A DNA stretch of 64,000 bases, taken from positions 3,720,001 to 3,784,000 of the forward strand of contig NW_025766225.1 of assembly GCF_003918875.1 (NCBI RefSeq), in the 5' to 3' direction. Numbering within the stretch: the first letter of the stretch is position 1; each line of letters begins with the position of its first letter. Of the stretch, positions 1,681 to 56,759 are shown piece by piece. The notes under the pieces were generated by a model. The model was not told the origin of the DNA, ran no database searches, and worked only from the letters and a program-made list of their open reading frames with translations. The position numbers and the translations under genes are program-made. The stretch is from Haliotis rubra. Taxonomy: Eukaryota.

Positions 1681-4143
1681 CAGGAATGATGCCTGACAAT
1701 AGTGAAAGCATGATTTGAAACACATACCGTACCACACTACACATACTAATGACCACTTTTAAAAATTCAATGAAAAACAATTGTGACCTACTACCATCTG
1801 GTTATTTTGGTGTTGACATATTTGCCATGGTCTCATTCCAGAAGTGAGGTAACAGCACATTTTGTTACAAGGCTCACAGAATAAAGATGTAGGTCTATCA
1901 AAACATATTGCAATCTAATCAATATATCGGACTTAAACTGAATTAAAAAAGACAGGCCTCAAATCCACATGCAATTTTAGAGCGACAAGTGTTTAAGTCC
2001 GGACATTGTCTTTGCACTAAAATAGCTTTGTGACATGGGGCACGTGTGTTAAAGTTCAAGGTCAATCTAACAAGCATGCCTGCAGTGTGTAACATAACCA
2101 GTGAAATCAACATATGCATCAAAACGTTTAAATCAACAAACAGTAGTCTTGAAAGGATGTGGGATTTCTGTCAGTGAAGATAATGAACAATGCATTCCTC
2201 ATTACCAAGGATATATAAACAATGCATCACATACAAAAGTATATCTGACAAATGTACATATCTTTACAAATCATATTTGGTGTGAGGACAGTTGGAAGGT
2301 CAATATGGGGAGACTTGATTAAAGACATGGAATTTAATCTGTGTTAATCACTTTAATATTATCTGTTTTAGATCTCAACCTGCAAAACAATTATCCATGT
2401 AGTTAAAGAACTTGTTATAATTTCAACATAGAGTATCTACATGAGGGAAGAACATATCAAAACTTAAATACAACCACAATGTAAATGTGTCTCACTTGAT
2501 GTAAATATCCTGTTCTCTTTTGGTTCAGTATGTGTCAATACAGTTAAGCCTTTTAGAAATTGACATTAACATTAGAGACAGTCTTAATTCAAACTGAAAC
2601 GGTATTTCTACCATGCTTATTATTTCTGAAGCTTACACTCAAATGTTGGAATATTTGTTTTAGACATCAACCCTCTAGAGTCAGTCATTGCTGAAATGCA
2701 GACATTTGGTGCTGCATCAGTGCAGACAGGTGCTTGATATTTCATCTACAGCTAAACCAATACACACTGTGTCGTCTAACAAGACTTTCTAACATGGTTA
2801 ACCCAATTACTAGGTAATACATTACTGTCACATAAATCGTAAAATTATGACACTAAAATAACTTGCATAGTCTCTCACTGGGTGAACCAACCTTGCCATT
2901 CTGCCTACACATTCAAAAGCTGTTGCTGTTGGTTCTGCTGGTACTGTTGATGATGGTGTCCTGGGACAGTTGTCCTGTTCTGCCAGTTCCTGCCATCGTC
3001 TTGAAATGTCCTGATCGGTTGATGCAATTACACTGTAATGTCTTACTGACCGACAAAACAAGGGTTCTAAAACATTGCAGACTTAGACTGATGTAATCAG
3101 ACAATGTGGGAACAATGCTTTACAAACAACTGCAATGTCATAATCAGATCAGGACAAAGGAATTGATCATGTGACTTGATATTAGAAGTAATTTGATTGT
3201 GATGTCGACACAAACAACCTAATGGAAAAAGAAATTCATTATAATAGGTCATGAGGAAATATTTGAAAACAATGTGAAGAGGAGGTGATTTTATGGTCAT
3301 TAAAAAAACAACTTACATAATTGTCACTATCATTCGGTACATTCAGACTCAGGTCACAATACATTAGGTGAGACATGAGAGTTGTCGGACAACCGTGTCA
3401 TCATCAACACCATCGTCATAACTTACTGTCCATCAATGCATATGTTTCTTCTAGATGTTAAACAGTGAAATGTCATGAGCAGCACTGCTGCTGCCAAGCC
3501 TAGAAACGAATCAGGGTGGACTGGGATTTTAACCCACAGTGATTTCTGGTACGTCTAAGGGACGCAAATCACTTGTGACCTCCGTAATACTTGAAAACCT
3601 ATCATTTTTGAGGGAATAATTAAGACAGAAAAAATTCCAATTCATTCTAAGCATCATGCAGACTATGCAATGATGCTGAAACGAAATAATTATCACATTG
3701 TTTTAGGTTAATATTACATAAAACATAGCATAGCATGAAGTAAAAAACATCAACAAACATCATTGTGACATCACAATGACCATGTAAATATCAAAATATA
3801 CTTATTTTCTTAAACCATCTCAACTATCTCCAAAACCGTACACGGAATACAGCACAACTGTCTGCTGAAGACAGTATCCACCAACATCAAACCAATCGGA
3901 AACAAAACCTATTGCAAGCTGTGCTGACCTGTGTGCAATACGGAACTTATATTGTTCAGACAAACATCACAGCAAGCACAACATCATCACATGACGTGTC
4001 ACATGGTTATGGATACTGCTGTTGCTGTCAAATATAGCGGACATAACGGCCCACCCTCAACAGGGCATCATGGACCGATGGTGGAGATGAAACGCAAATG
4101 GCGATTGGTTGATTTGGTGATGACATCACAAGGCGAGAGTAGG

Positions 4144-4211
4144 TTAGCAAGAGCAACCGCCTTCTGCTTCTGCATGGTCTATTGGGGGCTTGAGAGGCTC
4201 CAGTTCAATAT
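4144..4211 (-). CDS. Rab6: Rab6 alternative terminal coding exon B (xIELEPLKPPIDHAEAEGGCSC*)
   Basis: Phase-1 exon, 68 nt to TAA, ending EGGCSC like the vertebrate Rab6A C-terminus; acceptor TTCCTTGACttgtacaAG. Confidence 0.85.
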
Positions 4212-4220
4212 CTTGTACAA

Positions 4221-4229
4221 GTCAAGGAA
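4221..4229 (-). promoter_or_regulatory. U12-type branch site (TTCCTTGAC) upstream of Rab6 terminal exon B
   Basis: Matches TTCCTTRAC, ending 9 nt before the exon start; no polypyrimidine tract between branch site and AG. Confidence 0.75.
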
Positions 4230-7200
4230 TTAAAGAAGGCAGATATGATTCATTTACCCCACAAAGATAAGGCTATCGCTGAAAACAATGTCAATGCATG
4301 CCAGTCCTGGAAATTCTACTGGCCTGTAAATAAGCCAAACAGACATTATTTTGGATCTATGCTCAAATGGTTTGTGTCTCACCTCGTACCATCTTAATTT
4401 CTGACCAACATGGCTATACTGAATAGTTTACCTACTATTTCAATAATATTACAAGTAGAAATTACCTTTCATTCTGAGACTCACTCAGTCATTTTAACCA
4501 GTCACATGAACTATGAAGGTGTCTATATTGTTTGTTCATGCAGGAGTGACTTGTACTATGTTCACAAGTTGAATTTGATCTAAATTCATCAGCATGAGTT
4601 GACTTATTGTTGACCTTACCAGTAATGACATCAAATCTGACCAGAAATCCCAAAACCAAATTAAAACTAATATAACTGGTTGTAACCGACTCATCTGGCT
4701 GGATACGGCATGGTCTTTCATGTGGACAACACTGACTAAAATCTGTTGAGTTAACATCCGACGCCAAACAACAGCATTGTGAAACGATAGACTCATCATT
4801 GCCAAATTTATCTTTCTACCATATTTCTCTTGTTTAAGTCACTATCTGGTTGTCAAACATGATCACAATCAACTTAAAACCAGTACTTAGCCAACAGCAC
4901 ACATCATGTGTCCTTTGATGCATTTTGATCTATGTAATTTGATTTCTAACCCAACAAGCTTGGGGCTTACCATAAAACCAGATTTGACAAAATCAATTGA
5001 TATCTGTTAAAGTAAGGCAGGATGATGGACAACATGCCATGTGACCTGTTGAGCTAATGAACACATTAATGATAGCTCACTGATGAGATCAGACCTAGGT
5101 CAGTTCCTAAAACTCTGTGCTTGGTTCACCTGTTTTATGACACCCATACTAGGACCTTCATATGGAATTCTCACACAGTCTGGAAGTGATGCATGCTACA
5201 GGCAGAACAAGACTTGCTACCCTTTCTACAAACACCTTGTATCGTCATTCATAATAAGATAAACTCACACAAATCTGTATTTTTACAACCTCCAGAATAA
5301 AAAATGACAGATATTTGAGAGTGATGATTAACGGCTTTTGAAGTTTAGCATTTGCTTAATTCAGCCAGCAGGAAGGATTTCCTACTTCAATGACCAGTGC
5401 TAAACCTCACTTAAAAAATATTAACATGGATACAGAGTGAGATCCTCCACAGAAATGACAACAAAAACACTGGTCAGTTTTCCATTTTATTTGATATAAA
5501 AGCATGGCAACATACAACGCTACATGCCATTGGACTGCATGCCAGTGCAATATTACCATCATACCACAGTTACACCCCCACATTAATAAGTGTCTGTCGC
5601 ACAATCTTCCTCCTTTCAAATATTGAGCCAACAGGTTGATACAGATCATACGGAACATATTTCAGATAATCTCAACATGTTGCATCCCTAGCAACTGGGA
5701 TGATATAACAGTTATAACCAAGGGTTGATAGAAGACTTAATATAGAAAAAATAAAACTTGACATAAAGGACTTCTTTCACATTTCCAGATCACATCTTAA
5801 ATTAACACCTTTTCCCCCTTGATATAATAATTCACTGCTTTCTGATGCTGCATATTTGTTTGAACATATTTGTTTGAATCAAATCAATTTATAATTTGCA
5901 CTGGATAACCAACAGAAAAATGTGTTACTTTAAAAAATAATAAAATCTATCGTCCATTAGCCGAGTAAGAAAAGTTTTTGAATGATTTTTCTGAAACCTT
6001 CAATCAAATTCCCTTGAAACAAGCATCTTCATGCAATTTGCTTAGAGGTTGTCAGTGCTGCAGACCCTTGCTTAAGTCCGACTTACTTCCATCCTGGGTA
6101 TATAAACATCAGTAACACCCTACATGCAGAAGAGTTAGTGAAATGATTCAAGACACCAGAACTGTTGTAATGCATGGTTTCATGTCAGCACTATATCTGT
6201 ATGTATGTGGACTGTAAACAAAGTGGGCAGTGCAGTTTACACTTAGAAACACCCGGGAAAATCTGCCTGAAAGTCACTGAATAAAATCTTCTGGCAGTAG
6301 AGAAAACTGACACTTATAATGAATAAGTTAAACCTCATAGCACTAACCACCCATATTGTCTTAGCACAGGCCTCTGTGATAGTGATGAACAGCTATGCGT
6401 GCACACCCTATTGGCTCTCACCAGCTGTGACACAGGAATCGGTCAGTGACTTACAACTACGTGTGCACAACCATTAAGAAGCTAGATAGTCGTACCAAAT
6501 GAGGAACAATAACCTAAGAATGATGAGGCACATTCCAAGACGTCTAGTCTGTTATTGTTTTGCTTTCTGGTATTTACAAACTGTACTCATATTGATGGTA
6601 TATTGCAGAGTGTGACATGAACAACAAACAAAACAATGTTAGGAATACAAAATAAGCAAAGACAACCTAGGAATCATCAAGCATATCCCAAATCGGTCAG
6701 ACCCTCGTGTACACAATTTATGCCATGAAATGATTTTAAGTTATTTTGCATGTAAAGATGTGACACACTGTACTGAGACTATACATTTCCCATGTGATAA
6801 TTAAGATATATATTACTCTGGAATAATTCACAAATTACTACAGCATTATTACCACAAAGCTAGAAATTTACCTCAAATGGTAGAAGTCCAAGAAACTAAA
6901 AAGAAGCACAGGTCCTTTACACATATCCATAAACCAAACAGAAGTTGTATTTAGAAGTCATTTGTCTTCTTTTTTAGCCAAGCAAGCAATCAATTTAAAC
7001 ATGCACTAACTACAAGAGCATTTGCTGTTGTAAGCCGTTTGTTGTCTTCTGTAGTTGATGGAGCCATAAATTTAAAAATGTGTTAATAAGTCATGTTTTC
7101 TTTGGCTGGACATGCTATTAATTTTGAACATGTACTAAGTATTCCTTCGCATATAACAGACTTTATAAGTCATTTGCTGTCTTCTTTTGCTGAGCATAAA

Positions 7201-7700
7201 AATAATTTGAGCATGAGCAAGTATTTCTTCGTGAACATTTGTTTCAGTTTCCAATCTAATTCATTTCAATTGACAACGTTCCTATTGGTGCAGTCCAAGG
7301 TAGGTAAAAATGACTCATATAAGTTTTTAAAGATAGAGCCTGAATTTAAATTAAAAGTAAGAACACAAATGAAAACAAAACAAACTAGTTTATACGATGT
7401 GAGTTTGGCCAATATTTTGTGATATAACAAATCATTGACTTTGTTCGCTCTGCTTTCATTGGGGATAAGAATGCTAATATGCACTGAAAGTAAATCTAAA
7501 GACATTTTAGTTGCCATACGGATCAGTGTTGATCACATTTTTCAGTATTAATTGAAAAAGTATCAAGGTGGGAGAATGTCAAACGACATACCGGTAATAT
7601 GTGATGCAAAATGTGGAAATGTAATAAACAAAAAGGAGCCTTCAACCACCCATCCTCAAATTACTCAGTTACAGCATCTCATCCCAAGTATTATAAGGGG

Positions 7701-7826
7701 AATGCTATTTTTGAGGGCATTATCATTTGCAGAAGCCCTAGGTCTTCCATTAACTGCCCGACGAAGGAGCGCAGTTGAAAAAGATCGAGGGCTTCTGCAA
7801 ATGATAATGCCCTTAAAAATAGCATT
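7701..7826. repeat. Long inverted repeat (39-bp arms, one mismatch)
   Basis: 7701-7739 pairs with 7788-7826; the spacer pairs further. Confidence 0.9.
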
Positions 7827-8956
7827 ACCGTTATTATTGCTAAAATACATGGAATTTGTGTTGAAAAGAAAAAGGAAACAATGAAGGAATTTGACTGTAA
7901 GTTTACCCAAATCAACTTCTGATGGGGTTGACTGCCCGAATGCAATTACGTCAATTCAATTGACGTCACAACAGAAAGTGACGATATTCGACCTTGGCCT
8001 TTGACAAGACCATAGCCTGCAACATGTCAAACTACGTCAGTGTTCGGTTTTGGTCCATCAACAGCCTTAACAGTGCAATTGTTAAGGTTAGCACCAACAA
8101 GAAAGCCAATACTACTGCTATTTAAAGCGGGGAATTCTGGTTGCTTTGACTTGTTTGACCCAGAATATCTGCCAGTCGAAAGCCAATTAATGTCGAATGA
8201 ACCGTTAGCCCACGCACCCACTATGACGTCACTTGACAACAGAACTGATAGTAGCCCGTCGTTAAGGTTGAGCGGTCCAATACCATTTGCAGCGGCCCGC
8301 AAATTTCTGATAATGGGAGGGCCGTTTCATGATAATTCCATGTATTTTAGCTATAATGCTTTATAATTTGTTGTTCCAAGTAACAGATGTCTGCATATTA
8401 TCATCCAAACCTGTAACTTCTGACACACCCTCTTATGAATCACATATATAGCCAACAAACAATAAACACCAGTTGATATAGTTGAGTAAGAGTTATCTGC
8501 CCTTCCTATCCTACGTAGCCCCTTGAACCTTTCTGTAACCTGAGATCTTCCAAATTTGATTGATATGTGCAAACACTTGACAAACCATTCTGCACGTATA
8601 TGTGAATAAGAATTTTATCAAAGAATCCCTTGAATTTTTTAAGGTCTGGTGAAAGCCTTCACTGTTTTCAGTTTTCGTGAAAGCCACACAGTGCTGACAA
8701 AGGAATCGTCGCAGCCACTGTATATTCTGTAACATGCTGACTTTATTGACGTGGTCAGACTCAGCTTTTAGTAACAGTCTAGCAATAACATTGCAAGGTA
8801 CACTGGAAATTGGCGCCAAAATCTGTACCTCATTGGATTCAAAGCGCTTGGCTTTCCACACACCCAAAATAATGTTAACCGTTAACCTCAATGAAAATTA
8901 TTCATGTGACCAAAACATACCACTGGGTGAATTACCATTATCTGGTGTGCTGACAC

Positions 8957-11455
8957 CACTGCCAAACATTTTAGTATCCTTATTGCAATTACAAAATATA
9001 CTGCTTTCCTTCATAACTGTTCCTTGATTTTCACCCCAAATACATCAAAAGCTCCATATTATTATAAAAACCTTTAAGTGTTCCACTAATATTAATTTCT
9101 GTGAGCTTACTTAGGACAAAATTACAAATACTCAATGACTGATTGGCCCCAAATACTAAAATACAAATCATCTTGTCACTTGTTTCCCGACAAATCCTTC
9201 ACTAAGTAGTACATAATCATGTATGTTGAACGACAGATTTGTTTGTGGTTATAGGACATCCAGTCTGACTTGCTATATACAGTGATAACATAACCCATAT
9301 CTACACCCTTACACAAATAATAAGAGGAAAATAAATTAATACATATGAATGAATGCATCACTACCAATACAAACTACATGCAGAGTTAAAGCTTCTCCTG
9401 TATCATAAGAGCCACTGTAAATGACTGGAAAAGCAAGACTTTTGCATGTGCCCCCAAACAACATTACACATTCAATGTGTTCCCTCGTCTTGTTCCACTT
9501 GGTCCCCTCAGGTTGGAGGTATTATCAGTCCTCTATACAAATGAGGCAAGTATAAACCAGGGCACCATTTCACAAAGTGACTGCAACACTTTGACTGTTT
9601 TAAGTCTGTGTCTAGGCATAGGACCATGGTCACTGTGTAACTTTGCTGGTTATCATAAAACTACGACTGTTGTAGAGCAATTGAAAGCTTTGTGGCTCTG
9701 AGCCATGGATGACTCAAGGCTTCTAGTCTGTGTACAAGTATCACAGTGATTCTTGATTGGGTTTTTTATCTTGAAGACATCTTATACTATGAAGAACCAT
9801 TCATCAAAAATGTCATGGCTGTTATCATGGCCAGCCTTGAAAAATGGAATCAAACCCAGTCATGTTAGCTGGAAGAGTGACAAAGTACCAACCGAGCTAC
9901 TTCTCTGCCTCTATAAGCAAACAAAGTGAACTGTCTACTAACAGACCGAAGAACATCTGTTTTGCTAGTTATCAGGGACCCTCTAACACCCACTTTGATT
10001 ATTTATCTACTCACGATCCAATGACGTAACAAAATTTACCATAAAAGTCATCATCATGTCCATTTCGCCATTCCTCTAAGTTATAATCATAACCCTCAGA
10101 ACAGGCTTTCCATTGAATACACAATGGCCTTCCATTGGCTGAAAATGAACAAGAGGCAAATGCTCAACAAAATCAGGCTTTGCACAAGGCATTAATTGCA
10201 GTAACATCACTGCCAAACATTTTAGTATCCTTATTGCAATTACAAAATATACTGCTTTCCTTCATAACTGTTCCTTGATTTTCACCCCAAATACATCAAA
10301 AGCTCCATATTATTATAAAAACCTTTAAGTGTTCCACTAATATTAATTTCTGTGAGCTTACTTAGGACAAAATTACAAATACTCAATGACTGATTGGCCC
10401 CAAATACTAAAATACAAATCATCTTGTCACTTGTTTCCCGACAAATCCTTCACTAAGTAGTACATAATCATGTATGTTGAACGACAGATTTGTTTGTGGT
10501 TATAGGACATCCAGTCTGACTTGCTATATACAGTGATAACATAACCCATATCTACACCCTTACACAAATAATAAGAGGAAAATAAATTAATACATATGAA
10601 TGAATGCATCACTACCAATACAAACTACATGCAGAGTTAAAGCTTCTCCTGTATCATAAGAGCCACTGTAAATGACTGGAAAAGCAAGACTTTTGCATGT
10701 GCCCCCAAACAACATTACACATTCAATGTGTTCCCTCGTCTTGTTCCACTTGGTCCCCTCAGGTTGGAGGTATTATCAGTCCTCTATACAAATGAGGCAA
10801 GTATAAACCAGGGCACCATTTCACAAAGTGACTGCAACACTTTGACTGTTTTAAGTCTGTGTCTAGGCATAGGACCATGGTCACTGTGTAACTTTGCTGG
10901 TTATCATAAAACTACGACTGTTGTAGAGCAATTGAAAGCTTTGTGGCTCTGAGCCATGGATGACTCAAGGCTTCTAGTCTGTGTACAAGTATCACAGTGA
11001 TTCTTGATTGGGTTTTTTATCTTGAAGACATCTTATACTATGAAGAACCATTCATCAAAAATGTCATGGCTGTTATCATGGCCAGCCTTGAAAAATGGAA
11101 TCAAACCCAGTCATGTTAGCTGGAAGAGTGACAAAGTACCAACCGAGCTACTTCTCTGCCTCTATAAGCAAACAAAGTGAACTGTCTACTAACAGACCGA
11201 AGAACATCTGTTTTGCTAGTTATCAGGGACCCTCTAACACCCACTTTGATTATTTATCTACTCACGATCCAATGACGTAACAAAATTTACCATAAAAGTC
11301 ATCATCATGTCCATTTCGCCATTCCTCTAAGTTATAATCATAACCCTCAGAACAGGCTTTCCATTGAATACACAATGGCCTTCCATTGGCTGAAAATGAA
11401 CAAGAGGCAAATGCTCAACAAATCAGGCGCTTTGCACAAGGCATTAATTGCAGTA
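8957..11455. repeat. Near-identical tandem duplication, period 1251 bp
   Basis: 8957-10203 matches 10208-11455; identical ORF pairs are offset by 1251; differences seen only near the unit end. Confidence 0.95.
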
Positions 11456-12386
11456 GGATCTGGAAAGGACTTGAGGCTATCCTCATCTGAGAATGTCCAT
11501 GCCTTATCAGTACTCAGCCATGAACCATAGAGAGATCTTAGTGCTAAGATGATGGAAAGTCTATGTTGAGCGTCACAAAGTATGGACATGTTCATTGGTC
11601 TCTTCAAAGCATACAACTGTACAACAGATAGTGGCAAATTTTGATGTTAAAAATACACACATTCAAAACACATCACTGGCAAACCTGTTAGACAGTGAAG
11701 GAGAGCAAGAAATGTGTCATTCAGGTTTAGTTCCAAGAAACAACTGCAAAGTAAGTGAGTGATTGGGCACAAACCCAGGTCTGTGTGCCTGCAAGGTGAA
11801 CACCCTACCCACTTCCTACCTACAGTGTGGTACATGGCTTTAGTATTATCATGTTGAAGTTATCATTAGGAAAGATAAATAATCACTTAAACATTAAATC
11901 TTTCAGTGAAATGAAAATTTGACATGCCTTTTTTAAATTCAATAAAAAGACAAATGATCGTATCTTCAACAAGAAGTTTGGAGAAGTTCAGTTCAAAGAT
12001 ATTGTTTTATGAGGGGCACAAGAGAGTATACAGTTTCAATTTAGACTTGATTTTGTTTAATGATATTATTCCTAAAATATGAGGATTTCATATTTTCTTC
12101 AACATTAAAATACAAATTGTACACTACACTACTAACGAATAATGATGACTCTTGCCATACACTTATAATACTCTACAATCAATATTGTTTAACAGTCTTT
12201 ATGTTTGGAAATGAATGCTGCTATTTCTTGCTTTCCTCCAGTTTGAGCTATGTACAAAAATACAACCAATGATAACAGTTTATACAAAACTGAGTGGCCA
12301 ATGAAATCAGTGATTCTATGTACAAAAATACAACCAATGGTTACAGCTCATACAAATAGAGTAGCCAATGAGAAACAGCGACACAT

Positions 12387-12454
12387 CTAGCATGCACAGC
12401 CTCCTTCTTGTGTCTGAGGCTCGGCCGGCGTCTCCTTCAGTTTCACCTCAGTCA
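12387..12454 (-). CDS. Rab6: Rab6 terminal coding exon A (xTEVKLKETPAEPQTQEGGCAC*)
   Basis: Phase-1 exon, 68 nt to TAG, ending in a Rab6-type GGCxC prenylation motif; acceptor CCTTAACcctccccAG. Confidence 0.92.
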
Positions 12455-12463
12455 CTGGGGAGG

Positions 12464-12470
12464 GTTAAGG
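12464..12470 (-). promoter_or_regulatory. U12-type branch site (CCTTAAC) upstream of Rab6 terminal exon A
   Basis: Matches the U12 branch consensus TCCTTAAC core, ending 9 nt before the exon start. Confidence 0.8.
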
Positions 12471-14316
12471 TGTCAAACTCAATCAAATCACAGCAATTAA
12501 TCAAATAAATTAAATAAAGAAAAGAGTTTCATTAAGTTAATCAAGCACCTAAAAGCCTCTCTATTTCCAGTCTCAGATAAGAAACTTAAACAAACTATCA
12601 AAAAGACGTTTTTAGTAATTGTCTACATTGCAGTTATTAACTCGGTATTCCTTCAGACAGGTATCAATAAAAATAACCTCTGATGATGGCCTAGTTTGGA
12701 CCTTGGTGACACAAAAGCAATGCAAGGTAAAAATTTGAAATGAAGACTGAAAACCCAAGCACCAGGTGACCAGCACAATCTAGGTTGTCGATTACTTGTT
12801 TACAGTTCACCGTCCAAGCACAATTGGAAAACCTTGGGTTTTTAGGTACTCTGACCATGTCAGATATAATAAATACTATTTTTTTTATAATTTATCATTA
12901 CATCAGGTAGAATAGTTGAGTGATAATTTCTTTAAAGATCAATTAATATCTAAAACTACTTTTTTCCAGAATTATTTGAATTCAATAAAAAAAAAGTCAA
13001 ACACCATATTGCTATATTATGACAAGCAGATAAAGTTCCCTCAGAAATGTACAGAGGTGTACTTTCCAACTGTAACCATGCTTATTATAGCAGCTAGCAG
13101 TTAATCAGTACACTACAACCAGCACCTCAGACACAGAGAGGACAGCACAAGAACATTCAAGCAGTGATGTTAGCATGCAGGACGATTGGTGCACAGAGGA
13201 TCGATGAGGATGATCAAGGTCATGTACTGGTTGGATCACAATCACACTGACAATTACACCAGACATATTAGAAAATAATGGGTCACTGTAAAAAAAGAGG
13301 AATTACACGGCCCCTTAATCACCTGGGAAATGTTCTGTGAATTAGGAGTTAGTGAGTTACTGTGTTAGTTGTGAAAGGACTTGTTTTCAGGTACAACGTT
13401 ACTTATTACACACATTTTGTAACAAAATGAGCAGTAAACTGTGTGGATTGGTTTCCTGAAAGAATGAAGAAACAAGCAACTGGTTTTCAGTTAACAACTT
13501 TCAAAGACTTGTGTTGTGTAGTGTCTCTTTCATGGTGTCTAAAGGTAAGGTTTGTCCATCATGCAGGCTTGTTAAGCTGAAGTGAACAGGTTACCATGGC
13601 AACAGTCTACAATTTAGGAAGACCCTGTATTAATATACCATGACTATCAGACCTAGACATCCATGAAACCATTATCTGCAAGCATTATATAAAATGAATT
13701 CCTTCCCAAATGACACCCCAGAATTACCTCCCTTTGACAATGAATTATCACCTGACACCATAATATGGAATAATAAAGACCATTTGATGCATTGTTCTTT
13801 TCTTGCTAAAAGGGCAAGCTGGAAATGTACTCTTGTCAAGTTTGTGAAGTTGCACTGGTTGCTGTTTGTATTTGCCCTGACTAAAGCCTGACAGATAATG
13901 CTGTCCATTATCAACCTGAAGAAAGGGGCATGAACTAGCCCAGAAACATCGTGAGAAACAAATAAAGAAGTTGTTACTCATATATTTGTCTTGTATAAGG
14001 TAATGCTGTATTCTACCACTGTTACCCCACCATACAGATACAAGGTGACAAGTCCTTGCTTTCTCCCTTTAATGCTGCACGCTAGGCAGGTTACCGACAA
14101 GAATGTCTTTCAATGTCTTTTGATATAACAAGACATGAGGGATTAAGTCAGAATCTTCAGTTTACTTGGCATACAGTCTATCCACTACACCACAGATCGC
14201 CATGGCCTAGAGGTAACCTTGACAACTATCTAAACATCTGTGGACAGGAGATTTACAAGTTGGTAGCTCAAACACTATAGACATGAATGTTCTGACTGTT
14301 AGCACATGAAATTCAG

Positions 14317-14422
14317 GGCCTAGATTTTCGAGCTCTCTTAGCACTAAGATAGGCGCAAGTTAATGTTAATGTATGGCACTTACGACTATCTTAGCGCTAA
14401 GAGAGCTTCGAAAATATAGGCC
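14317..14422. mobile_element. Palindromic MITE, Harbinger-like
   Basis: GGCCTAGATTTTCG...CGAAAATATAGGCC inverted arms; CAG TSD. Confidence 0.75.
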
Positions 14423-14930
14423 CAGGACTATGTAGCTCCTTACTGTTTGGGCAACATATTTACAAGTTTGTAGCTCAAGGTTAAGGCATGAGATTCTTTT
14501 AGCAGCTCAATGTACTGTCTGTTAAACAAAGCAGCGTTCTCCCTGAGGAAACTGTTTAGGAAATAAAGTTTGCTCTACCCCAATGTGTTTTGTAATAAAG
14601 TATAGTTTTGCCCTGAACTATTATAATTAAAGCACGAGGACGGTAGTCTGAGTGCTTTGATGTTATAATAGTTCAGGGTGCCGTTCCACTAACCGATCTT
14701 ATCTAAGATCAATCTTAGCAAGTTATGCCAATTTTACAATCGTCTTAGCTAAAAGTTACACCCGTTCCACTAACCGATCTTAGGCCGATCGATTCGTAGC
14801 CGGTCCCGATCTTACGATCCGATCCAAGCTTAGATCGAGACTCTTTCGTGCGAGAGATAGAGGAATGCGAGGCACGAGTTATCTCCCTTTGCGTAGTCTA
14901 GCAAATGATGGAAGTAGTTTACGAACCAAC

Positions 14931-15256
14931 TGAGTGAGTGAGTGAGTTTAGATTTACGCTGCCCTCAGCAATAGTCCATCTATATGGCGCGGTCTGTAAT
15001 AATCTAGCTAAGATGCATAGCGTTCACTAACATGAGCGTTCATTTTAGTGAACGCTATGTATCTTAGCTATAAATAATCGAAGTCTGGACCAGACAATCC
15101 AGTGATCAACAGCATGAGGATCGATCTGCGCGCAGTTGGGAACCGATGACATGTGTCAACCAAGTCAGCGAGCCTGACCACCCGATCCCGTTAGTGGCCT
15201 CTTCACGACAGGCATGGGTTATTGAAGTTCAATATTCTAACCTGGGCCTTCACGGG
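14931..15256 (-). mobile_element. SINE-like family C copy, nested in the Harbinger-like element
   Basis: Colinear with the 43708 copy apart from the 66-bp insertion. Confidence 0.82.
15005..15070. mobile_element. 66-bp palindromic mini-element with TAG...CTA ends and about 9-bp TSD, inserted in a SINE
   Basis: 26-bp arms with one mismatch; flanked by ta(a)ataatc / taaataatc; absent from the sister SINE at 43708. Confidence 0.75.
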
Positions 15257-18035
15257 TATTTTTCCAACCAAGTGTAAACGTGGAGAAAAAAAACTAGAGC
15301 AAAATATTAGGGTAGTGAGCACCTTGGTTTCAGGTGCAAGTGCGTGAAGCGCTGGGTATCAAGCATAATATAATAATAATAAATGCATATTTATAGTGCC
15401 TATTCCACATCCTTGGGCATGCTCAAAGCTGTGTACAGATAATTTACGAGAATATTTACAGCCGAGATTATAATTAAGTAATATACTGAGAACAGGTTTT
15501 AAGTCTGGACTTTAAAAATGTCAATTGTGTCAGAGCTTTTAATATGTGCCTGAACCTTGTCAATCAGAATAAACGAGGCGTGACGAGGCTATATATAACG
15601 TATGTAGAATCTGTCAGTGGTCTTGAATAACACGCGGCCTGTCTTTAGAATCCCACACCAAATATGCGCAGTGAAATCAAACATATTTGTATCTTTTTGC
15701 TTCAGAACATTGTTCACTTCACGGCTGTCCCATGACGTTGCAATATTGTTGTACAAATGTGTTACACCGACTCGCTCGGTTGTGTTCCAATGACGACAGT
15801 GGTCAGACTGGCCTGACATTTGTAAGGCTTCAGTGCAGTATTTGTTTACATCACAGAAATATACAAATTCATTTCATGGGGGACTTTAGGGGACGCTCAC
15901 GGTGAAATGCTCGCTCTTATTTTTCACAAAGAATAGGAAAGTCACCATTTTGGTTTCTCTACGATTGATTTTAGCTATCCTAAGTTGGTCATGAGCAACT
16001 TAGACTTTGAATCTTAACTTTACGATTGACTTAGGTAAGATTGGTTAGTGGAACGGTATGCCGATCGTAACGTCACGCTAAGATTGGGATTTTAGGGGTT
16101 TACGATTAGCATTGGCCTAAGATCGGTTAGTGGAACTGCACCCAGGGCAAAACTATACTTTATTACAAAACACATTGGGGTAGAGCAAACTTTACATCTT
16201 TTCTAAGATGCTAAATTTAATACTTTCTAAGGATAATTACGATTAATTTAAGGCAGAAAACAAACGACTGTGTCGCTGACCTAAATTAAGAATCCTCGCA
16301 CAGGGTTAACTGGCGCGCTGTTCTATTGATGTGTCTGCCCCCCTACGATAACACGAACGTTACCAGAAAAAAACAAATGATAACAGTTTGATGACGGTTT
16401 ACGTTCGGATTAAATATCTTCTCTGAATTATCTTAATTACATCTGTCATTAACGTGAAACCATATGGGGCAATATGAACGCCGTGATTTCTACTACCAAC
16501 GTAAGTTTAGATCAGTACATCCAGATGAAGCTGAGTAGTCAAGTGACATTCCATGATTGCATTGTGGGAATGTAAACATTGCGGACGTTACCGTGTCGCT
16601 GAAAACTTGTGAGTCGAATTGAGACATTTTAACCGTCGTAAAACATAAACGTAATGTTTCCACCAGTGATGTTAGCTGCGTGAAGCAACTGCAAACCAAG
16701 AAACGGGATGCAACGGAGTAGTTTACTGTAGGAGGCCGTACGAGGCGATGACAACTGACATGTATCGTGACGTCGCTTACATTGTGACGTAATGTAAAAT
16801 GGTTCGATTACGAGGGGGCACACTAAAATGGCGTAGTGACGGGATAACATCATTCAATTGTTACGTCATCAAAAAACTATACCTTTATTGTCTGATAATG
16901 TATTTTTTTTTCGATTGTTCTAACCGCTAGGCATCTTAGAAAATACCACAAGATCACCACCTCACTTCAGTTTTTAACAAAGTGCCCTTCAAAACTTAAG
17001 CACTGAACCATAAGATGTGTTGTGGAATGAGACACCATTACAAGACACTTGTACACACATGTATATACACAGGACACCACCACACCCTCAACGATAAGCC
17101 TGGGACTGGAAATAGGAGCTCCATGAAGTTACTGCCATTCAATATGGCAAAATAAAAACAGCTTAAACAGTCAACCACAAATACTTCACATGAACTACCA
17201 TATGTGACATATTGTGAGGCAAGCTGATGCTGCAGTTGTATTGTGTCTGAAGATACAAAGTATTTACTTCCAGACATTGCTCTTTGAAAGGCAAAAATCA
17301 CTTGAGGACACAATGACAACTTCCACAACAGATTCTCTATCGGACTGACCATTTTAATATTCTAGGGGCCTGAGACTGTGTGGAGGCTAGGTATGTTTTT
17401 TCAGTTACAAATGCAAAATCCCATATTTTCATATTTAAACAAGCCTAAACATTGTTTTGTTGAAAAGTTGTAGCAACAATGTAAATTTCTGTGACAATTT
17501 CATTTTTCCCCATCAGTATTAAGTAATACAAATAAATTTCAAGCATTTACAAGCAGACCCTTCCCTACCCTTGAAGATCAAATGGTCAGTCCTATGACAC
17601 TGTCTGTTCTTTGACATGTCACACATGATATGTAAATCAAGCTGTATAATTCTTACCTCAATGTGACCAGGCCCTTGTTGAACTTGTTCTTTCAAAACGT
17701 TACGTACAAAGTTCTAAAATGGCTTACTCGCTGCTTTTCAAAATACAGATTGAGAATGGAAATGGGTTTGTGATTGTGAATTATTCAACACATTGCAAGT
17801 GATTTCATATCATTTGATTGGCTCGTCAAGCAATTATTTTGGCGAATACACATCAATGAATATATTTCCATAAACATGTCAAACAGACATAAATTAGGCC
17901 ACTCCCAACAGAGTAAAACCAAGTCCACCACGCTAGAGTCAAATACACAGTACCCCACAGGGCCACCAGGCCTGTCACACTTGGAGGAAATCCAGCATGG
18001 GTTTCCAAACATCCCAACAAAAACCAGATCATTAA

Positions 18036-19430
18036 CCCTTTCAACACCGCAGGTCGCTTTGCCGCCACAACGCTATGAGTCCCCAGACACCGGAGGCCGC
18101 ATTTGCCGCCAGGCAGTAGTCACGCCAAAATGAGACATAATTTTAGGAACCTACCTGACTTATGATTCATATATTAAATCTATCACATTTCACAATGTCT
18201 GAAAACACTTATTAAATTTCAATTTATCATATATTATCAGCAGAATTAAAATTATAAACTATTTTTCGCAATGTTATTGAAAACAACGATTCTCGACACA
18301 TGCTTCGCAGCTGGTCTACAATAACATTGTGAAAGAGCAAAGTAACGATGTTTCGAGGAATTCATTAAATAAATTGAATAAACTAATGAATAAAATCAAC
18401 AACAACATTCATAAAAGTTGTCAAACGCATATATAAAATTACTATTTCCATCTTTTGTGCGATCATGTAATGCAAGTCAAGTCACTGACGAAGTGACATC
18501 TCGCTCACTTCAATCTTCACCGACACGCATGTTTAATGCTAAAAATATATACATGAAGCATTTTGTCACAGGTCATAACCTAGCACGATACGTCCAATAA
18601 GTTCCATAATTTACGACAGGTAGCGCATTTCTTGCTTAATATGTTCAGAATAGCATTATTTTACCCAAAACTTTGTCTAAATCTGAAGGTTTTCGCATTT
18701 AGGACGGTATCCATTGCCGTAATATGATTGGCTGCCTTAGGTCACGGTCTGATTTTGACCAATCACTTAACCCTTATAGCAGACTGTATAAAAGCCGCCA
18801 TTAGAAACCAATCTTTATCCAATAAAATCGCTTCTTACAACTGTGAAAATACTCTTGGCAAGGGTACAGTGATATTGTTGATGTTCAGAGCTTTAACGAT
18901 GCCCGACATCAAACGATTCACCGCATGTTATGCATAATTAAGCTTTCAAAACGGAGGTATTTTCCGTTGTTATGTCATGTTACCGAGCGGAAAGCCACAG
19001 ATATCGGGAAATAGGCTTACCATACATATTATTTAAGAAATCTTTTATAATAATTTTCTGATGACGAAAAATGAAAATATAAAAGAAAAAGGCACGGGCA
19101 TGTTATCACATGTCACAAATGGAAAAAAATCGCCATAGTTTTTGCTTCTTTCGTGGTTTATCTGGACGTTATAAATGTAAGCTTGCATTTTCATTCAAAA
19201 ATACATTTATTTAAGTTGTAGTTGTATTATTTGAATAATATTATAAAAATAAACTTCATATTTATCAACAGTAGGATTAGATCTTTAAATGGTGTATGGG
19301 ATGTAGTAGCAATAACGCTTTTACAAGCTTATAATTTCCTTCATAATCATAGGCTTCATCTATGACCTCAGGGTCTCTGGGAACTCGTGTCATGGCAGTA
19401 AATGCCTCTGGTTGACTGGTGTTGAAAGAG
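18036..19430 (+). mobile_element. Non-autonomous piggyBac-like DNA transposon (about 1.4 kb), copy 1
   Basis: TTAA on both sides; TIRs CCCTTTCAACACC / GGTGTTGAAAGAG; no transposase ORF; highly similar to 37822-39223. Confidence 0.88.
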
Positions 19431-19648
19431 TTAATGAAAACAAGTGTTCCAGAATTGTTTGTGTTCGATTATGAGAAATTATGATCGATTGCTTAGTCGT
19501 TTAGTCACTACGATCAATCTTCGATTATTTCAATTAATCGGAACACCACTAGGCTCAACATACTGTACCCCTTGTAGGGATTGAATCCTTGGCCTTCAGG
19601 ATGATGAGCAAACACTTTAATCACAAGGCCACCACACCAACCCATCTA

Positions 19649-19798
<150 letters not shown>

Positions 19799-20652: not shown

Positions 20653-20793
<141 letters not shown>

Positions 20794-20957: not shown

Positions 20958-21149
<192 letters not shown>

Positions 21150-23351: not shown

Positions 23352-23405
23352 CGTTCTGTCTTCCAAGTACATTGTCTTTGACAGGAAGTCTATACCTATG
23401 GTCGC
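23352..23405 (-). CDS. Rab6: Rab6 coding exon 3 ([18 protein letters not shown])
   Basis: tttccgcag acceptor, 54 nt, GTGAGT donor; switch I motif TIGIDF. Confidence 0.97.
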
Positions 23406-44653: not shown

Positions 44654-44712
44654 CTGATATGTGTTGTCAAAACTGTCATACATGAACCTTGTGATAAGTG
44701 ACGTCTTTCCCA
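44654..44712 (-). CDS. Rab6: Rab6 coding exon 2 ([20 protein letters not shown])
   Basis: tgtttcag acceptor, 59 nt, GTAAG donor; completes the GKT P-loop; phase matches exon 1. Confidence 0.97.
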
Positions 44713-52352: not shown

Positions 52353-53110
<758 letters not shown>

Positions 53111-56195: not shown

Positions 56196-56759
56196 ATGAT
56201 GTTTGAAGCGCGCCTGATTCTCGACTCTACTACGTAGTAGAAGAAAACGACCTGGTGAAACTTCAGGGACTCATTGACGAAGGCAGAAATTTAGATGAGT
56301 TTTATTTTGATGATCAAAACATCAGCACAAAGTCACTTCTACACGTAGCCTGCGAAAAGGGAAGATATGATTGTGTGAAACTCTTGATTGACAACAAAGC
56401 TTCCCCGTTTGTGCGAGACAAATGGGGACAGTCACCACTTATGTACTCAGTTGCATCCAGACATGCTGATGTAGCAGAACTGTTGTTGCAGAAGAATTGT
56501 GACATTATCGATGATTCAGACAGTCATGGGAAGTCAGCCTTGCACTCGGCAGCTGAGATCGGGTATGTTGAAGGCATCAGGGTGTTGCTGAAGTATGGAG
56601 CCAATGTTAATCGTCAGATGATGGACGGGGAACACAGCCTTGAGCCGAGCCATCTGTGAGAGAGATTTGGAAAACTGCATAGAAACTGTTCATATGTTGA
56701 TCGAAGGTGGAGCTGACTTGAACATACGAGACAGGAGATGTAAAAGGACTGCTTTGCAG
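56196..56759 (+). CDS. Ankyrin repeat/SOCS box protein, first coding exon (ankyrin repeats; two apparent 1-nt frameshifts near 56210 and 56630)
   Basis: Acceptor tttactttacAG at 56152; ankyrin motifs LLHVACEKG, GQSPLMYS, GKSALHSAA, GANVN, then after the frameshift GNTALSRA...GADLN; donor CAG/GTGTGT at 56759. Confidence 0.85.

Follow-up and report, generated by a model that had tools for sequence, protein, structure and literature searches.

Rab proteins with a CXC end are doubly geranylgeranylated and carboxymethylated there, and the hypervariable linker ahead of this end contributes to membrane targeting. For CDC42, the ubiquitous and brain isoforms differ in a tail that is swapped by alternative last exons. 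Similarly, the alternative last exons of KRAS (4A/4B) exchange its lipidated hypervariable tail (PMC9882654). Here we describe a comparable arrangement in the Rab6 gene of Haliotis rubra, located on the minus strand of a 64,000-nucleotide (nt) stretch of contig NW_025766225.1 (assembly GCF_003918875.1, forward-strand positions 3,720,001 to 3,784,000; hereafter the window, numbered from its first letter). The window contains two Rab6 terminal exons, A and B, which encode different CXC tails, and we place at roughly 0.8 the probability that this mollusc Rab6 gene has two alternative terminal exons behind one U12-type donor, that is, a donor used by the minor spliceosome. As in KRAS and CDC42, a constant GTPase (G) domain would thus be combined with alternative terminal exons that swap the membrane-targeting tail. 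Those two genes, however, change their lipidation chemistry and have U2-type introns, whereas both Rab6 tails keep the CXC di-geranylgeranylation signal and the intron is predicted to be U12-type.

Within the Rab6 family itself, the vertebrate isoforms Rab6A and Rab6A' also arise through a duplicated exon. That switch uses mutually exclusive copies of an internal exon of the G domain, whereas the corresponding exon (exon 4) is single in the window, where tblastn returned one match (21122-21015) and no Rab6A/A'-style duplicate was found; the switch described here is therefore a different one. The minor spliceosome is likewise involved in the choice of mRNA 3' ends in SRSF10 (PMC7244321) and U11/U12-65K (PMC5473595), in both of which a minor splice site competes with a major one within an autoregulatory loop. 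In Rab6, by contrast, the competition would be between two minor acceptors for one minor donor, and each of the two products would be productive.

The closest described introns are those of the mammalian orthologues. RAB6A, RAB6B and RAB41 are catalogued as minor-intron genes in human and/or mouse in the supplement of the Minor Intron Database (PMC6717393), with the sites ACA/GTATCCTTT and branch CTCCTTAAC for RAB6A, GGA/GTATCCTTT for RAB6B and GGA/GTATCCTTT for RAB41 (the slash marks the splice site). These introns share with the mollusc intron their position (after ...ED plus the base A), the donor A/GTATCCTTT predicted for it and a branch site of the TCCTTRAC type, which indicates that the mammalian and mollusc introns are orthologous. 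Judged from the catalogue entries alone, each mammalian gene has one branch site and no apparent second tail exon, whereas in the window, as in Littorina, Colias and Asterias, one donor would face two U12 acceptors. The U12 nature of this Rab6 intron is already known, and the mollusc intron is its expected orthologue.

The two isoforms are not new either. Public gene models of Littorina saxatilis, Babylonia areolata (isoform X2), Lingula anatina (X2 and X3), Asterias amurensis and Colias eurytheme (two models), all of them automatic annotations, display the same two tail classes, M-[IT]EVKLK[DE]TP...GGCAC (A-type) and N-IELKP...C.C (B-type), with the same exon order and phase. The locus is thus less novel than the original prediction held. 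In the openly accessible literature, we found no published description of a Rab6 tail switch or of its two U12 acceptors. The two-tail Rab6 layout is old and conserved, and what merits further work is the conservation across bilaterians of a U12 switch with two acceptors.

Two terminal exons and their acceptors

The elements that define the two tails are as follows.

12387 to 12454, minus strand: alternative last exon A, coding part, encoding (M)TEVKLKETPAEPQTQEGGCAC and a stop codon; 90% identical to the A tail of Littorina
12464 to 12470, minus strand: U12-type branch-site motif CCTTAAC, 9 nt before exon A
4144 to 4211, minus strand: alternative last exon B, coding part, encoding (N)IELEPLKPPIDHAEAEGGCSC and a stop codon; acceptor at 4211 backed by contigs of three RNA-like runs
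4221 to 4229, minus strand: U12-type branch-site motif TTCCTTGAC, which fits TTCCTTRAY, 9 nt before exon B

Both exons contribute 68 coding nt, both are in phase 1 and both stand behind an AG acceptor. The context of exon A is ccttaac-cctccccag/TGACTGAGG..., giving the product xTEVKLKETPAEPQTQEGGCAC, and that of exon B is ttccttgac-ttgtacaag/ATATTGAAC..., giving xIELEPLKPPIDHAEAEGGCSC; in each, the hypervariable linker leads into a CXC prenylation motif immediately before the stop codon (GGCAC in exon A, GGCSC in exon B). The pair of 68-nt phase-1 exons, each with a branch motif ending 9 nt upstream, had been proposed beforehand at these positions, and both can be read directly from the sequence.

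The stretch between branch motif and acceptor measures only 9 nt in both cases (cctccccag for A, ttgtacaag for B) and holds no extended polypyrimidine tract. Over both strands of the window together (128,000 strand positions), there are only 20 copies of CCTTRAC. This rarity puts the chance of finding the motif 7-13 nt before one given acceptor at ~1e-3, and before both at ~1e-6; none of the other Rab6 acceptors in the window has CCTTRAC at that spacing. Acceptors A and B are therefore predicted to belong to the minor spliceosome (U12, GT-AG subtype) and to depend on it, and it is unlikely that they are of another kind.

Transcript cover was assessed with public runs of one organism that hold about one third of the sampled words of positions 2600-12599, and contigs of four of these runs (X1, X4, X21 and X19) were aligned to positions 2400-8399. 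The large, DNA-like run X19 covers the whole of 2400-8399 evenly at ~14x. The small, transcriptome-sized runs X1, X4 and X21 behave differently: they cover 2403-4211, fall to zero depth over 4212-5478, and cover the sequence again from 5479 on. Sharp exon boundaries and intron-free cover led us to take these three runs as RNA. They outline two separate 3' untranslated regions (3'UTRs).

5479 to 12386, minus strand: 3'UTR of isoform A, with RNA-like contigs over 5479-8399 and beyond
5487 to 5492, minus strand: AATAAA poly(A) signal of isoform A; the 3' ends of the RNA contigs, at 5479, 5481 or 5489, follow it within a few bases
2403 to 4143, minus strand: 3'UTR of isoform B, with RNA-like contigs that go on for ~2 kb further below 2403

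The two terminal exons thus each have their own stop codon and 3'UTR, and both 3' ends are covered by RNA-like contigs; the isoform A poly(A) site (near 5479) lies 1.27 kb ahead of the start of exon B. The exon B contigs of X1, X4 and X21, in records of 844, 849 and 499 nt, respectively, cease to match at exactly 4211, and each continues with 30 extra letters. Thirty letters equal k-1 for contigs built with k=31, which points to a branch of the assembly graph, and hence to splicing at 4211 to an upstream exon that has a second partner as well. Expression of exon B is thereby shown, with 4211 and not 4217 as its splice site. The existence of exon B transcripts, a point on which the original prediction depended, is thus borne out, whereas its suggestion that the exon had originally started 6 nt upstream (4217) does not hold: the contigs end at 4211, position 4217 is preceded by TG rather than by AG or AC, and mollusc- and annelid-like orthologues read N-IEL, exactly what the 4211 join to an exon ending in A yields (AAT = N).

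The 3'UTR of isoform A has two structural peculiarities. A 665-nt insertion at 7692-8356 is skipped by the contigs of each of the four runs, the DNA-like X19 among them; it derives from a very high-copy repeat (summed X19 depth ~50,000), contains a 57-nt inverted repeat (7690-7746 / 7781-7837) and is probably a polymorphic insertion resembling a miniature inverted-repeat transposable element (MITE) or a short interspersed nuclear element (SINE). Further upstream in the transcript, an essentially perfect tandem duplication with a period of 1251 bp occupies 8953-10203 and 10204 to ~11410. Contigs with k=31 could not have crossed such a duplication, so that the sequence should be single-copy in the samples of the public runs; the second copy could be a duplication private to this sequence, or else an artefact of assembly. 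Together, the insertion and the duplication mark the assembly as structurally atypical along this stretch. Three A-side contigs each run exactly 2863 nt past 8357, with identical ends. If a single copy of the 1251-bp unit is assumed, their common end falls near 12470, which is suggestive of the first base of exon A plus a short overhang. At 1467-1633, the distal 3'UTR of isoform B contains 28-nt units (...CACTAGTGGGAAGGGAATTAACTCTTGC...) repeated in a short tandem array. An exact look-up of ten ATG-initiated open reading frames from the two 3'UTRs returned no matches.

Rab6 tails and introns in other animals

In every animal Rab6, an exon encoding LFRRVAAALPGM... plus ~10 residues, here termed E7, stands between exon 6 (E6) and the tail exon. 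Our comparison set comprised a library search with exon 5 (E5), two tail-focused searches, three genomic loci (L001, L003 and L004) and one transcript (L002); look-ups with proteins of Lingula, Babylonia, Liolophura and Mytilus yielded no further locus. The three genomic loci are summarized below, with each branch site followed by its distance to the exon.

Littorina saxatilis (L001): E7 donor GAGA/GTATCCTTTT; exon A, TTCCTTAAC + 10 nt; exon B, TTCCTTAAC + 11 nt; A to B, 7.2 kb
Colias eurytheme (L003): E7 donor GACA/GTATCCTTTT; exon A, TTTCCTTAAT + 14 nt; exon B, TCTCCCTAAC + 11 nt; A to B, 2.6 kb
Asterias amurensis (L004): E7 donor GACA/GTATCCTTAC; exon A, TTTCCTTGAC + 20 nt; exon B, TTTCCTTAAC + 20 nt; A to B, 4.7 kb

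At each locus, two tail exons with U12-type branch sites lie downstream of a single A/GTATCCTT donor, the site of Colias exon B (TCTCCCTAAC) being a one-mismatch variant. The encoded tails fall into the two classes: the B tail of Littorina reads N-IELKPKEP...SCSC before its stop codon, the Colias tails read MHEVILRQ...GGCAC (A) and TVDLQTQSP...SGCVC (B), and those of Asterias read MIEVKLEKTP...GGCAC (A) and IPVTLTPREPDNDMQQEEGGCYC (B). The NCBI gene ranges of Littorina and Asterias end at the exon B stop codon, which means that isoform B has already entered annotation pipelines.

B-type tails also occur in spliced transcripts and in further models. The tail N-IELKPPEPHPEPREEGGCSC ends a protein of 207 residues (P0323) encoded by L002, an intronless JGI contig of 1.8 kb; N-IELKPPEPSVDPSDPDAGCSC was found in Logan transcript contigs (P0368), N-IELKSPEPQTQYTEKDTGCAC in another intronless transcript contig (P0369), N-IELKPKEPMMDSLEQDASCSC in RefSeq isoform X2 of Babylonia areolata (P0393), and T-PIELKSPEPTELDQEGGCSC in RefSeq isoform X3 of Lingula anatina (P0370), which stands beside the A-type isoform X2 (P0285). 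The exon junction in L002 is GATGACA/ATATTGAG, and the first seven bases after it are the same as those of exon B in the window. The donor can be recognized even in gene models that run into the intron: in insects, fishes, birds and lizards these read ...ED-SIL-[Y/S/C/L/F], which corresponds to A/GTATCCTTT (A/GT ATC CTT T) and thus to the U12 GT-AG donor consensus.

A gastropod, a lepidopteran and an echinoderm thus share a layout in which a single U12 donor stands before a pair of U12 acceptors leading to different CXC tails, and the window agrees with this layout in each part that it contains. Its occurrence in mollusc, butterfly and sea star, together with the B-type isoforms of a brachiopod, suggests that the layout probably dates to early bilaterians. 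With the RNA-like contigs, the transcripts and models of other animals and the three orthologous loci, the proposal of alternative last exons that have U12-type acceptors and differ in CXC tail and 3'UTR is well supported. The accompanying proposal, that one U12 donor serves both acceptors, is seen in the three orthologous loci; the window lacks the donor exon, so for Haliotis rubra we infer the donor from these relatives.

A variant of the layout seems to exist in some insects, where the Gly-Gly codons of exon A (G/GTGGxTG; P0043, and Colias at ~29950 of L003) look like an internal donor onto exon B. Its product would fuse both linkers (...KDPE-AVDLQTQ...GGCMC) and is either real or a prediction artefact. 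An internal donor of this kind (G/GTGG), feeding exon B as in P0043, was rejected for the window, which reads GGA GGC at these codons and has no GT.

The missing penultimate exon and alternative readings

Six upstream Rab6 exons were located by motif scans, tblastn and direct reading across 52466-19673.

52397 to 52466, minus strand: exon 1 (E1), coding part; phase-1 end, donor GTAAGT
44654 to 44712, minus strand: exon 2 (E2); donor GTAAGA
23352 to 23405, minus strand: exon 3 (E3); donor GTGAGT
21017 to 21122, minus strand: exon 4 (E4), ...YDIT; donor GTGAGT, single copy
20663 to 20774, minus strand: exon 5 (E5), ...GNKTDLSDK; donor GTTTGT
19673 to 19766, minus strand: exon 6 (E6), ending ...NVKQ; phase-0 end, U2-type donor GTAAGT

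The G-box motifs GKTS, WDTAGQE, GNKTD and ETSAK are all present, tblastn shows 77-97% identity between E4-E6 and Rab6 proteins, and the exons are near-identical to Littorina Rab6. E7 was found in the window neither by motif regular expressions or enumeration of candidate phase-0 to phase-1 exons, nor by tblastn with the E7 peptides of eight species, nor by a degenerate DNA pattern allowing 3 mismatches or blastn with the Littorina exon. The interval from 12.5 to 19.7 kb contains no RTATCCTT donor on the minus strand; the strand's only RTATCCTT matches, at 2214 and 26474, were rejected as the donor, as neither comes after coding sequence. When E6 is joined straight to exon A, the reading frame gives KQ and then TGA, and a join to exon B shifts the frame. 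Without E7 and with both of these joins failing, the gene as assembled cannot encode either isoform, and hence no prenylated Rab6.

We consider it most likely that E7 was lost by assembly or haplotype drop-out. An alternative, which we regard as unlikely though far from negligible, is that E7 has really been deleted in the sequenced haplotype and that the transcripts of the public runs come from intact alleles; the two-tail architecture would then be true of the species and not of the assembled copy. Besides the absence of E7 from the window and the failure of both direct joins, a deletion would account for the short distance from E6 to exon A (12455-19672), which is 7.2 kb as compared with 15.2 kb for E6-E7-A in Littorina, some ~8 kb less, and it would be in keeping with a window that differs structurally from all four runs by the 665-nt insertion and the perfect 1251-bp duplication. 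Rab6 is, however, highly conserved and single-copy here, and its remaining exons are intact with good splice sites. Moreover, a perfect tandem duplication of 1.25 kb looks more like an artefact of assembly, so that loss of E7 through assembly drop-out is no less probable than its true deletion. Between E6 and exon A lie two 52-nt arms (14564-14615 and 16143-16194) that are 100% complementary and 1527 nt apart; a DNA transposon with these arms as its terminal inverted repeats could explain them, as could a foldback artefact close to where the exon is missing.

Several observations weigh against one U12 donor with two U12 acceptors in this gene. With the donor exon E7 outside the window sequence, the donor and the E7-A and E7-B junctions are unread in this species. 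The exon A branch motif, aCCTTAAC, is one base short of the TCCTTAAC consensus, and the C-rich run ahead of the exon A AG could also serve a U2-type acceptor. On the transcript side, X1, X4 and X21 are only guessed to be RNA, the 30-letter overhangs are known by their length and not by their letters, and the use of exon A rests on homology and contig-length arithmetic, not on read alignment.

Some of these points would favour ordinary U2-type or hybrid acceptors, with branch-like motifs that do not decide the spliceosome in this species. Conversion of U12 to U2 introns is known, the donor lies outside the window, and the tract before the exon A AG, short as it is, is rich in C. Against this stands the motif at the right distance at both acceptors, for which we estimated a chance of ~1e-6; the same motif is found at all six acceptors of Littorina, Colias and Asterias, there with a perfect GTATCCTT donor, and the catalogue of minor introns includes the mammalian homologues of this intron. 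We therefore hold U2-type or hybrid acceptors to be very improbable. Least credible of all, and refuted for practical purposes, is an exon B foreign to Rab6, whether a relic of a second copy or haplotig, as the original prediction had itself considered, or the start of an unrelated downstream transcript with a GGCSC open reading frame: its position beyond the isoform A poly(A) site would fit, but tblastn finds no other Rab6-like exon near exon B in the window, the RNA contigs end at an AG acceptor with an overhang and are hence spliced to an upstream exon, Littorina, Colias and Asterias have the same distal exon 3-7 kb past exon A and inside their gene ranges, and B-type tails are present in full-length spliced transcripts of Rab6.

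Proposed mechanism and its implications

In the arrangement that we favour, the single U12 donor of E7, A/GTATCCTT, would serve both acceptors. Pairing of this donor with acceptor A, followed by cleavage at the A poly(A) site, would produce isoform A with a 3'UTR of ~5-7 kb. Should the donor remain unspliced and cleavage not occur, the polymerase would reach exon B, and pairing with acceptor B would give isoform B, whose 3'UTR would also extend over several kb. In both proteins the GTPase domain would be complete and the CXC end doubly geranylgeranylated, and the differences between them would be confined to a hypervariable linker of ~18 residues and to the 3'UTR. Splicing of both isoforms may then require U11/U12, and the two tails may differ in function.

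We speculate that the distal exon B is able to compete because minor splicing is slow. A broader proposal, which we consider doubtful, is that the terminal Rab6 intron has been kept U12-type for >500 million years as a switch, its slow and regulatable kinetics setting the ratio of tails and 3'UTRs in most bilaterians, and that vertebrates kept the intron and replaced the switch with the duplicates RAB6A, RAB6B and RAB41. If true, such a kinetic switch would be a direct link between the activity of the minor spliceosome and trafficking in the Golgi and secretory pathway.

Taken at its predicted scope, the arrangement would allow an animal Rab6 to change its hypervariable tail and 3'UTR while keeping its G domain, with the choice of tail made wholly between splice sites of the minor spliceosome. 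For the minor-splicing field, this would provide a natural, conserved example of a single U12 donor that serves two U12 acceptors, and for Rab biology it offers a pair of predicted Rab6 isoforms in invertebrate models. For genome annotation, the window is an example of an assembly without an essential Rab6 exon and with further structural oddities nearby.

Beyond the Rab6 gene, an Rfam scan of the window returned no matches. An open frame with ankyrin-repeat sequence (...LHVACEKGRYDCVKLLIDNKA...) lies at ~56309-56614 on the plus strand, divergent from Rab6. An ankyrin-repeat gene occupies the equivalent place in Littorina, which indicates that local synteny is conserved.

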